A stretch of DNA of 64,000 bases, from contig JAWQFM010000003.1 of assembly GCA_033442325.1 (NCBI GenBank), positions 932,109 through 996,108 on the forward strand, read 5' to 3'. Origin of the DNA: Salpingoeca rosetta (Eukaryota; Protista; Choanoflagellata). Every line of letters begins with the position of its first letter. The stretch's first letter is position 1. This document shows, one piece after another, positions 8,480-20,624 of this stretch. The notes beneath the pieces are model-generated. The model was given only the letters and a program-made list of their open reading frames with translations. It did no database searches and was not told the DNA's origin. A program made the position numbers and the translations under genes.

Positions 8480-10103
8480 GCACCAGCACGCACCATGGCA
8501 GTGAGGTGCTCAAAGGAGGCTGACTCGACGGCGGCGGTGTACGAGAGGTCAGACGGGCGCGGTGGGTGCGGGGCGGCGCCAGATGCACCAATGAACACTG
8601 TGCCGGGGTCAACCAGCGACAGAGGAGGACCGCGGTCTGTGGTGAAGACAACCGGTGAGTGGGGTCAGGTGATGCACAATTGGAGGTGAGATGGGCAGTG
8701 CTGTATGGTGGCTGGGATGACGACAGGGTCACGCATGCAGCGGCGAACGGGTGTGTGTGTGTGCAGATAGTTAAGCCAAGCAACATGCTTGTACCTTTGG
8801 GCTGTGTGCCTGTGGTTGGATCATGCTGAGTTTCAATGCAGAACATCACTTGGAGCATGGGCTTGGCTTTTGGGTACTGGTTGTTGGACAGCGAAAACCA
8901 CTTGGTGGTCTATTCAGTCATTGAGTGTGTGTGTGTGTGTGCGTTGTGTGTGCGTGTGTGGTGTGTGGTTTGTGTGTGTGTGTGAGTGTGTGTTGTGTGT
9001 GCGTGCATTAGACAGGGGTAAAGGCGGCGTGGAGGCAGTGTTTGGCGCTCCACTTGCTGAGGACAGTGTGTAGGGATATAGGTAAAACAAAACTGCCACA
9101 ACGCTCACACATGTTCACAGCCAACACACACACACACACACACAAATACATACTTACCTCTTGAGCGTTGATGGATCGGAGATCAAGCATGATGTAGCCT
9201 ATGGGGCGCTCCACTTTGGTGCGCTCATCAATGGCCACGCACTGGTTGTGCAATTCAAGGATGGGGAACATGGAGACAGACAGAGGTGAGTTGAGAATGC
9301 CACCAGCAGCAATACAGCAGCGACAGGCACTGAAAGAGGAGGGACTGGAAGAATGACAACACCTCGAGCTTGATGGGCGTCCGTTGCACACGGAGCTGGT
9401 GCAGTGTCTTGTGGTCCACCATCCATGCCTGTCAATCGTTCGAAACGAACACAAGTGTAAGCGTGTGGGTGAGGGGGAGGGGGTATGTAAGGAAGGTTAA
9501 ATGCAAGTGCTGTGTGTGTGCTGTTTGTGTGATGCTTATCTGTGTGTGCATGTATTTGTGAGTGAGAGTCAGAGGGTCAGAGACCCAGGAGAGAGAGTGT
9601 GTGTGTGTGAGTGAGTGAGAGAGAGAGAGCAAAGACATCAGTTTCAGGGGATTGGCTGACCAGCTCGTTCTCCACGAGGAACTTTGAGTGGTGTGGCACG
9701 GGGTCCGTCAAGAGCACTTTTGAATCAAACCGGCCACGCACAACAAACGAGAGACCCTTTCGTTCCGGAAAGCCTTTGCCTGTCACGGGTGTTGTGTTGG
9801 TTGTTGTTTTGGTGGTGGTATTGGTTTGAGGAACGTGCTGCTCGCTGCTGCTTGCTGGATGACTTTGGTGACTGTCAACAGCTTACACAGCAACGCAATT
9901 CACACAAACTCACACACAAGTACACACACAAGTACACACACACAAGTACACACACACACACACACACAAGTACACACACACACACACAAGTACACACACA
10001 CACACACAAGCCCACACATGCACACACACAAGCCCACACATGCACACACATCCACACCTTGGAGGACAGCCACCACAACGGCGACAGCTGCACTGGTTGC
10101 CAT
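4069..10103 (-). CDS. CEP120: Centrosomal protein CEP120 (N-terminal C2 domains, C-terminal coiled coil), multi-exon
   Basis: Exons read MATSAAVAVVVAVLQG|KGFPERKGLSFVVRGRFDSKVLLTDPVPH..., HQLRVQRTPIKL, ERPIGYIMLDLRS, ALDLEVWMQREKERF, LAEEWRQRNEQREAL and end LAQERDALLASGVYQPHDAVIVNLDRQINRLLGAK*, matching remembered CEP120 N- and C-terminal motifs. Confidence 0.9.
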
Positions 10104-10107
10104 CTTT

Positions 10108-10133
10108 GGGCCCGTTCACAGCGAGTAATTGTG
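10108..10133 (+). repeat. Harbinger left terminal inverted repeat
   Basis: Exact reverse complement of 16272-16297; GGGCC start is typical of PIF/Harbinger. Confidence 0.95.
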
Positions 10134-10272
10134 ATTGCTGGCGAGTATTGGCGAAACTGGTGGTCGGTGTGCGTTCGTGGCGAGTAATTGTTTTCTGCTG
10201 ACTCACATGTGCAGCCATTGGCGCGCCGTGTTTGGCGCCAGCTGCCGTTCGAAGAGAAACCGTCCACTGGAT

Positions 10273-19300: not shown

Positions 19301-19729
19301 GCAAAGCTTCGTTGCACTCGGCGCTTGCAGTGCTGAGGGGCGACACCGTGCGCTCTTCCGCATCATTCTGCATCAGCATCAGCAGTGCTGTTGCCACTTC
19401 TTCCCGAGCAGCACCATCATCAAACACCTCCTCCTCACCCTCAAAGTCGTCCTCATCAACATTCATCGTCGTGGTGGTGTGCCGCTCAAAAAACAACCTC
19501 CCAACTTTGTTTGTCGATTTTCACCACTTTCCCGACGAGTTTGAGATTTTGGCGGATTGCGATTCTGGCTTGGGTGGTAATTTTGCAAGCGCTCGTTGAC
19601 TGACTTCTCGTTGTCAGATCCGAACGAAACCAACACCACCGGAAAGAGCGCTCAAAGACGCCCTAGACGCTTCCATCAGCTCACATCACAACGAAAAGCC
19701 ACTGAGGACATTATAATTGAGCGATACCC
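16302..19729. mobile_element. Sola (Sola1-like) DNA transposon, 3428 bp, apparently intact
   Basis: Perfect 32-bp TIRs GGGTATCGCTCAATTATAATGTCCTCAGTGGC (16302-16333 and 19698-19729); 4-bp TSD GTTT (16298-16301 and 19730-19733); DDD transposase inside. Confidence 0.92.
16574..19466 (-). CDS. Sola DDD transposase, 5 exons (~19466-19261, 19141-17991, 17887-17769, 17612-17457, 17338-16574)
   Basis: Cys-rich CGIRQCKC..KC and VPLCREGFRNVLGI; RTDVCDTC; catalytic ISFD, ADNCGAQNKN, FLLQGHTKGLHDAFFG. Frame stays open across junctions; the last intron is GC-AG. Confidence 0.88.
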
Positions 19730-19898
19730 GTTTGTCGTTTCGAATTTGGTGACGCGGATAATTGTGTGAAGATGTGTATGAATTGTCCTTTGAGAGCAAC
19801 TTCCCCCGCCTTTCACGTGCCTTGGCAGATACAGCAGGCGCATTCACCCCACACAAGCATAACCTCACACCCACACACACACATCCACACATCTGACG

Positions 19899-20624
19899 AT
19901 GACGGCGACAGACGCGACGGAGCTGCCACCTGTGGACGAGCGCCTGGTGATTGAGGAAGGAGACACACAGAAGGTGATTGAGGTGGTCGAGGAAGACGGC
20001 AAGCGGTTCAAGCAGACGACAGTGTACAACGTTGTGCGCGAGGAAGTGAAGATGCCCTCGCGCGTGTTGGCGCGGCGGTCGTGGGCCAAGTTTGGCAAGT
20101 CCGCGCGCGCGCCGCCTGGCCCGGAGCCCATGACCACGTCCATCAGCGATGAGGTGTTCATTGAATTCACTGCCGCCAGAGAGGCTGAGGCCGCCGAGCA
20201 GCGCAAGCAGGAGGAGCAGCGCCAGAAGGCACAGCAGATGAGCGTGCCATACCGCCTTCCCGTGGCCCTGCGCCAGGAGAAGACGGAGGAGGAGATGCCC
20301 AAGCGGCCACAGACCGGCGCGTACCGTGCACCGCGAACGCGTAACGGCGCCGCATCTGCCTTCGATGAGGAGCAGCCCAGCCTGCAGATCACCAACCTGC
20401 CGCCCTGGACCACAGATGACGATTTGCGCGATCTCTGCAACGCCATCGCCCCCGTGCGCCGCGTGTTCCTTGCCAAGGACAAGCGCACTGGCGACGCCAA
20501 GGGCTTTGCATATGTCGACTTCAACATGCGCCAGGATGCTGCAACGGCGCTGGAGAAACTGGACGGCCACCGCTATGGCCCCTCTGTGCTTTCGTGCGAG
20601 TGGGCCAAGCCCAGGAGGAAATAG
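19899..20624 (+). CDS. EIF3G: Eukaryotic translation initiation factor 3 subunit G (intronless)
   Basis: RRSWAKFGKS..PPGPEPMTT..DEVFIEF N-terminal region plus RRM LQITNL..RRVFLAKDKRTGDAKGFAYVDF..LSCEWAKP. Confidence 0.93.
   Translation: MTATDATELPPVDERLVIEEGDTQKVIEVVEEDGKRFKQTTVYNVVREEVKMPSRVLARRSWAKFGKSARAPPGPEPMTTSISDEVFIEFTAAREAEAAEQRKQEEQRQKAQQMSVPYRLPVALRQEKTEEEMPKRPQTGAYRAPRTRNGAASAFDEEQPSLQITNLPPWTTDDDLRDLCNAIAPVRRVFLAKDKRTGDAKGFAYVDFNMRQDAATALEKLDGHRYGPSVLSCEWAKPRRK

Follow-up and report, generated by a model that had tools for sequence, protein, structure and literature searches.

Two stacked DNA transposons between CEP120 and eIF3g in Salpingoeca rosetta, and a candidate transposon-end promoter for CEP120

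DNA transposons that favour the 5' ends of genes and can supply regulatory sequence there are known from Drosophila (the P element), maize (Mutator) and rice (mPing/PIF). What becomes of a gene, however, when two unrelated transposons come to lie within a few nucleotides of its start codon? The question is posed by a 64,000-nucleotide (nt) stretch of the genome of the choanoflagellate Salpingoeca rosetta (contig JAWQFM010000003.1, positions 932,109 to 996,108 of the forward strand; ‘the window’ below means this whole stretch, and positions are counted from its first letter), in which a PIF/Harbinger-like element, here called E1, and a Sola1 element, here called E2, occupy the space between the divergent start codons of CEP120 and eIF3g. 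S. rosetta serves as the main genetic model for the unicellular organisms most closely related to animals; very little is known of its promoters, and its vegetative cells are haploid and need the flagellum.

Three described elements come into question as relatives of the two found here. The survey of S. rosetta by Southworth et al. (2019; PMC6875170) reports SrosS, a Sola1 element with a consensus of 3,270 bp, 32-bp ends, a 4-bp target duplication and two copies, the basis of its assignment being its closest RepBase entry, Sola1-1_MonBre. The same survey reports SrosHar, an element of 3,112 bp that is present as a single copy and whose start differs from that of E1 (PMC6875170). Spy, of the PHIS superfamily, has a single open reading frame (ORF) and GGANNNNG ends, and inserts strictly at AAA|TTT without duplicating its target (Han et al. 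2014; PMC4122938).

The space between CEP120 and eIF3g

The start codons of CEP120 and eIF3g lie 9,796 nt apart, and E1 and E2 occupy the interval, the non-transposon DNA amounting to 4 nt upstream of CEP120 and 169 nt upstream of eIF3g. A previous, sequence-only reading of the window had proposed that two different DNA transposons are stacked between these divergent ATGs, with a Harbinger end only 4 nt from that of CEP120. Both proposals are borne out: coordinates, inverted ends and copy counts agree on a pair of unrelated elements, one PIF/Harbinger-like and one Sola1, and the four nucleotides in question are a CTTT at 10104–10107, E1 following from 10108. The ends of both elements were set by script (a listing of repeats is dominated by CA microsatellites), and their patterns were then searched for genome-wide in the 55.4-Mb assembly (68 pieces), with the reversed patterns as control. 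E1 ends occur exactly eight times, making four copies (on C3, which holds the window, and on C6, C19 and C30), and E2 ends exactly four times, which makes one copy each on C3 and C10; with the reversed patterns there were 0 matches for either element. The gene order is identical in another NCBI assembly (GCA_000188695.1, scaffold GL832959.1). Furthermore, 17 sequencing runs from the same organism, produced in several studies between 2013 and 2024, hold at least 84% of the words sampled across 8900–12400, a figure for the stretch as a whole in which the junction words were not singled out, and three probable RNA runs hold 43–52% of the words sampled across 8900–12400. At the level of the assembly the two-transposon stack is confirmed, and very probably it arose by two recent insertions into a CEP120/eIF3g space of 173 nt. 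The interval is laid out as follows.

10058–10103, minus strand: CEP120 exon 1, with its ATG at 10103–10101, 15 codons and a split codon, then a GT donor; it abuts the native CTTT beside E1
10101–10103, minus strand: CEP120 start codon ATG, read from the sequence as CAT on the plus strand
10104–10107: native CTTT (AAAG on the CEP120 strand), the only non-transposon DNA left upstream of CEP120
10108–16297, plus strand: E1, 6,190 bp long (200 of them N), PIF/Harbinger-like, of a short, non-autonomous subfamily; called from inverted ends, copies and transposase homology
10108–10133, plus strand: left inverted end of E1, beginning GGGCCCGTTCAC; from the sequence
10207–13892, plus strand: E1 accessory gene (NCBI call of 529 aa), divergent from CEP120, with its ATG at 10207 or 10274
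13231–13330: assembly gap 1, crossed by no reading frame; it falls in the long, CA-rich intron of the accessory gene
14079/14080: junction of a clean deletion of ~930 bp, through which the transposase has lost its final two exons and with them the catalytic E; the C30 copy has the same deletion, and the C19 and C6 copies retain the segment
14731–14830: assembly gap 2, in the E1 transposase remnant; it stands for ~150–190 bp that in the other copies include the exon with the second catalytic D
14831–16060, minus strand: E1 transposase remnant; exon 1 has its ATG at 16060 and, at 15967, a TAG that replaces TGG; the exon with the first catalytic D is at ~15298–15520
16272–16297, minus strand: right inverted end of E1; from the sequence
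16298–16301: GTTT, left half of the 4-bp target duplication of E2 and the sole bases separating E1 from E2
16302–19729, minus strand: E2, identified as SrosS (Sola1); 3,428 bp with 32-nt inverted ends
19466 to 16574, minus strand: coding sequence of the E2 transposase (NCBI call of 790 aa), co-directional with CEP120
19730–19733: GTTT, right half of the target duplication of E2; from the sequence
19730–19898: native spacer of 169 nt retained by eIF3g; from the sequence
19899–20624, plus strand: eIF3g, a single exon encoding 241 aa (Pfam eIF3g, 3.5e-20; RRM_1, 2.1e-17); the NCBI gene call agrees

The reconstruction of the site before insertion needs correction. As earlier proposed (...CATCTTTGTCG..., with about 170 nt between the ATGs), the empty site is 4 nt off and incompatible with the 4-bp GTTT duplication of E2. 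The sole empty site that fits both elements reads ...CATCTTT^GTTT^GTCG..., with 173 nt from ATG to ATG and with E1 inserted here without a duplication. Because both insertion points lie at most 8 nt from the CEP120 ATG, they are more likely to have fallen in the 5' untranslated region (UTR) of that gene than in the middle of a promoter.

How firm is the CEP120 start codon itself, on which these distances depend? A Pfam scan of the CEP120 exons returned nothing, whereas a search of solved structures did give matches: exons 2, 3 and 4 are collinear with residues 18–52 (E = 0.0011), 60–84 (2.7e-4) and 79–106 (0.015) of 6ewl_A, and 4icw and 6flj also match CEP120 exons, the remaining solved-structure matches being only to repeat-design proteins. 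As exon 2 starts at about residue 17, exon 1 with its 16 codons is needed for the first strand of the C2 domain, and exon 1 spliced to an acceptor near 9786 does encode a short hydrophobic run that resembles a first strand, as in the solved CEP120 N-terminus. The NCBI model of CEP120 (960 aa) begins at the identical ATG, and an in-frame TGA stands four codons upstream of it, within E1. The sequence-only reading had allowed that the true start might lie downstream of 10103; exons 2–4, however, match the C2 domain from residue 17–18 onward, and the ATG at 10103 is the true start of CEP120.

The two elements, their copies and their target sites

By its sequence E2 is SrosS, and it has been published with this copy included. 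The start of the published consensus equals the reverse complement of the window from 19729 downward over its first ~240 nt, and the end alignment in the supplement of PMC6875170 contains this very copy together with 20 nt of the flank on the eIF3g side. The transposase has a match to Pfam DUF7869 (1.2e-15) in its last exon, and the motifs D / DNCG.QNKN / HTK...D are visible in it. Over ~3.3 kb the two SrosS copies are about 99.6% alike, with 14 substitutions and a few small indels between them. The target duplication is perfect in the window (GTTT|GTTT), whereas the C10 copy is flanked by CATT|ACAT, which is not a duplication. At that other copy (C10:56200–56591, minus strand) an ATG stands 1 nt outside the left end and opens a stretch of 9 codons that runs up to a GT donor, and beyond a CA-repeat intron comes a plausible coiled-coil exon; if the 9 codons are a real first exon, and with E1 removed from the window, both SrosS copies may sit 1–8 nt upstream of a co-directional host start codon.

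E1, by contrast, is a PIF/Harbinger-like two-gene family that the S. rosetta survey did not catalogue: its end sequence is in none of the 14 supplementary files of PMC6875170. Its inverted ends, 26 nt long, are perfect at all eight ends. Identity with the published SrosHar was considered and rejected, because the two disagree in end sequence, in length and in copy number, and so was membership of Spy, in view of the two genes of E1 and of joined flanks that are not AAATTT. The transposase was read from the least-gapped copy (C19), whose spliced form has 358 aa with approximate exon borders. Encoded on the minus strand in multiple exons, it follows the PIF order of motifs, that is, an N-terminus resembling a helix-turn-helix, the first catalytic D in AADGVHI, then NRKGF.S.N and G.EGS.HD, the second D in FDAA, the catalytic E in RSRVEACFGILK.RF and finally ACC.LHNF. 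A single transposase exon scores 16.8 bits (E = 0.005) against PF13359, which is below the cut-off of 24.8, and a six-frame scan of the genome with the same profile missed all E1 copies because their exons are short. The link to known transposases is thus indirect: the spliced 358-aa protein matches the ORF L009:323–1042 (phmmer, E = 8e-19), which is PF13359-positive at 36 bits, and by way of this homologous, DDE_Tnp_4-positive ORF the E1 protein can be classed, at one remove, as a DDE_Tnp_4 / PIF-type transposase. The ORF in question, intron-poor and located at C12:1012426–1012848 (L009), shares the motifs G.EG..D / FDA / LTP / VE...GILK.RF with the E1 transposase, and may itself be related to the E1 lineage or be a domesticated copy from it. 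As for the second gene, the N-terminus of the accessory protein is Cys-rich, and the protein also contains S/Q-rich repeats and, split by an intron, a Myb-like-looking region of the W...W type; Pfam run on the separate exons gave no family at E <= 5 except a chance-level C1_1, and no Myb/SANT.

The four E1 copies fall into a long subfamily (C19, C6) and a short one (the window copy and C30), the latter marked by ~20 diagnostic substitutions in the last 1.5 kb, by the deletion at 14079/14080 listed above and by the TGG-to-TAG nonsense change in transposase exon 1. Only 1 substitution in 1,467 nt separates the window copy from that on C30. The near-identity of these transposase-dead copies means that the short form, a non-autonomous derivative, was mobilised in trans very recently. 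An NCBI model of 219 aa at 14881–16360 (minus strand), which starts inside the SrosS end and spans the E1/E2 junction, is an annotation artefact.

Where does E1 insert? In four of four copies a host coding sequence lies beyond the accessory-gene end and is read away from the element, at the following distances.

C3 (window): CEP120, with its ATG at +5 from the accessory-gene end
C6: a 683-aa ORF with UQ_con (3.5e-19; L015 178–2226), with its ATG at +145
C30: a signal-peptide protein resembling Gal-3-O-sulfotransferase (2.6e-5; L017 511–918), with its ATG at +480
C19: a purple-acid-phosphatase-like gene, from codon 6 onward at +1

On C19 the element splits the acid phosphatase gene after codon 5–6, and excising E1 together with one TTT restores an ORF in which a signal peptide is followed by a GDWGG motif. 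It would thus seem that E1 lands at gene starts in a constant orientation, a pattern drawn from only four cases. At the C30 copy a further outward ORF, again with a signal peptide, lies 233 nt from the opposite end of the element.

The target sites are less regular than the positions. The flanks of E1 are TTT|GTT in the window (10105–10107 / 16298–16300), AAA|AAA on C19 (locus L003, 626–628 / 7753–7755), TTC|ATA on C6 and TTT|TGT on C30, so that a 3-bp duplication (AAA) is found in one copy of four and TWA in none; in three of the four, the flanks when joined give CTTT^ and then a T/G-rich run. Attempts to recover a regular target duplication, either by shifting the ends by 1 nt or by re-pairing flanks among the four copies, yielded no scheme that works. 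Such irregularity is odd for copies that are ~99% alike, and odd for a PIF/Harbinger-like element; it is conceivable that E1 inserts without duplicating its target.

A promoter for CEP120

Because no room is left for a leader of its own, CEP120 must have transcripts that either start in transposon DNA or cross it. We propose that two independent, recent cut-and-paste insertions occurred at most 8 nt upstream of the CEP120 ATG, in the 173-nt head-to-head space, and that CEP120 would now be transcribed from the left end of E1. The promoter of the E1 accessory gene, whose ATG lies 100–165 nt inside that end, would fire both ways, and the new divergent pair of CEP120 and the accessory gene, at 104–171 nt from ATG to ATG, would re-create the short spacing of the old pair (173 nt). 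With E1 supplying the CEP120 promoter, the space up to the eIF3g promoter would turn into a neutral landing pad, on which a second element could survive. Two features of the left end may be mentioned in this respect. The first 102 nt of E1 contain no ATG on the CEP120 strand, which leaves room for a leader that is short and clean. Four substitutions private to the window copy fall in its first 368 nt (at 10216, 10242, 10310 and 10323), as against one in the final 1,467 nt (Fisher p = 0.007), and that at 10216 turns CGATTGG into CCATTGG, that is, into CCAAT on the CEP120 strand, ~113 nt upstream of the ATG. Both the ATG-free leader and the private substitutions are compatible with a bidirectional E1 promoter and may be taken as weak hints of one. 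The explanation as a whole, which joins the insertions to the E1 left end as promoter of CEP120, has in our judgement somewhat less than an even chance of being correct. Less likely than not, although worth stating, is a wider account in which the left ~100–170 nt of E1 would be a compact bidirectional promoter, the family would be guided to gene starts in a fixed orientation and replace the host promoter instead of destroying it, the copy at CEP120 would since have been tuned by changes including the CCAAT, and SrosS may follow a similar rule.

Several observations weigh against this proposal. An orientation shared by four of four copies is a small sample. The change at 10216 that creates the CCAAT also makes an upstream ATG, and it may be due to chance or to a sequencing error. 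That the 173-nt spacer was the native promoter of CEP120 is assumed, and a search for short N-terminal CEP120 fragments among transcript assemblies, made with exon 2 as the query, found no match. Moreover, the CEP120/E1 junction lies within one contig and the E1/E2/eIF3g junctions within another, so that the CEP120 side is linked to the eIF3g side by scaffolding across two gaps in a four-copy repeat, with no regular E1 target duplication to tie both ends to one insertion. Might the left part of E1, with CEP120, and the right part, with E2 and eIF3g, then derive from different copies, in which case the two genes would not be neighbours at all? The ~99% identity of the E1 copies would make such a scaffolding artefact easier, the flanks TTT|GTT join the two ends by no duplication, and next to both gaps there is sequence that other E1 copies do not match: the 90 bp after gap 1 (13331–13420) and the 149 bp before gap 2 (14582–14730), of which 14590–14730, to the left of gap 2, is unique in the genome. 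These stretches are probably low-quality contig ends, with a local rearrangement as another possibility; both gaps lie inside E1, and the sequence on either side of each is collinear with the other copies. Against the artefact, all four left and all four right E1 ends pair on scaffolds at element-sized distances, re-pairing of flanks among the copies yields no better duplications, and the middle contig, with the short-subfamily deletion, is concordant with the right contig, with the short-subfamily substitutions. A scaffolding error of this kind appears very improbable.

The other alternatives accept the stack and differ over how CEP120 is expressed. CEP120 might be served by read-through from the same-strand SrosS transposase gene, from the E1 transposase remnant or from both; all three are on the minus strand, SrosS has been reported as expressed (7,946 mapped reads; PMC6875170), and the other SrosS copy may have a host ATG, co-directional with its transposase, 1 nt downstream. 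Such a transcript, however, would run antisense to the accessory gene for 4–6 kb, and its leader would carry 13 upstream ATGs in the first 600 nt beyond position 102, poor for translation, so that we regard read-through as rather unlikely. It is also possible, if improbable, that the locus is a hypomorphic or null allele that is either tolerated or confined to part of the culture, an empty or single-insertion allele existing beside it. This would be in keeping with the youth of both families (1 substitution in 1.47 kb between the short E1 copies; SrosS copies ~99.6% alike) and with the fact that E1 has already disrupted another gene, the acid phosphatase on C19. It sits less well with the runs from several studies between 2013 and 2024, which hold ~0.9 of the words of the junction stretch (again for the whole stretch, junction words not singled out), and with the general expectation that CEP120 is needed for the flagellum: since S. 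rosetta is haploid and requires that organelle, a culture that thrives is unlikely to have a silent CEP120. Distinctly improbable, finally, is continued use of the native promoter, with the 9.6-kb stack removed as a new 5'-UTR intron and a near-native leader thereby restored. A candidate donor at the E2 end (ACGG|GTATCG, minus strand) and an acceptor-like AAAG before the CEP120 ATG are both present, and they resemble the splice sites inferred for introns in E1, E2 and CEP120. Sites this short are nevertheless expected by chance. The introns inferred in the window measure 0.1–1.5 kb, and one of 9.6 kb, full of further splice sites and with three genes inside it, would be out of the ordinary.

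Significance and relation to known systems

If CEP120 is indeed driven from the E1 end, that end would be a natural promoter module of ~100–170 nt, possibly bidirectional and directly testable, and the locus would illustrate the way in which insertions where an essential gene starts can be tolerated in a genome that is compact and haploid. If, on the other hand, this allele gives poor CEP120 expression, there may be differences in a centriole gene between laboratory strains. The repeat inventory of S. rosetta would gain a two-gene family so far uncatalogued, which was recently mobile, targets gene starts and makes no regular target duplication.

How do the two elements compare with those already described? 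E2 has the same 32-nt inverted ends, two copies and 4-bp duplication as SrosS; the locations of the copies are not discussed in the paper that described it, and the word ‘promoter’ is absent from it (PMC6875170). E1 resembles PIF/Harbinger elements in its GGGCC-type inverted end, its two convergent genes and the motif order of its transposase. It is unlike them in its target sites, as none of the four copies has the usual 3-bp TWA duplication, and where PIF/Harbinger elements carry a Myb/SANT gene, E1 does have a second gene, whose single exons give no Pfam Myb/SANT match. With Spy it possibly shares the lack of target duplication, while differing in having two genes and in both target and end sequence. 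The resemblance to the P element, Mutator and mPing is one of behaviour: E1 likewise inserts at or just upstream of gene starts, and the host gene may come to depend on the transposon end, the promoter activity of E1 being putative. Insertion at the 5' end of a gene is, in itself, an ordinary event; the present locus stands out because only 4 nt separate the insertion from the start codon of a gene that is presumably essential, the host being haploid, unicellular and related to animals, and because a second, unrelated element is stacked a further 4 nt out.

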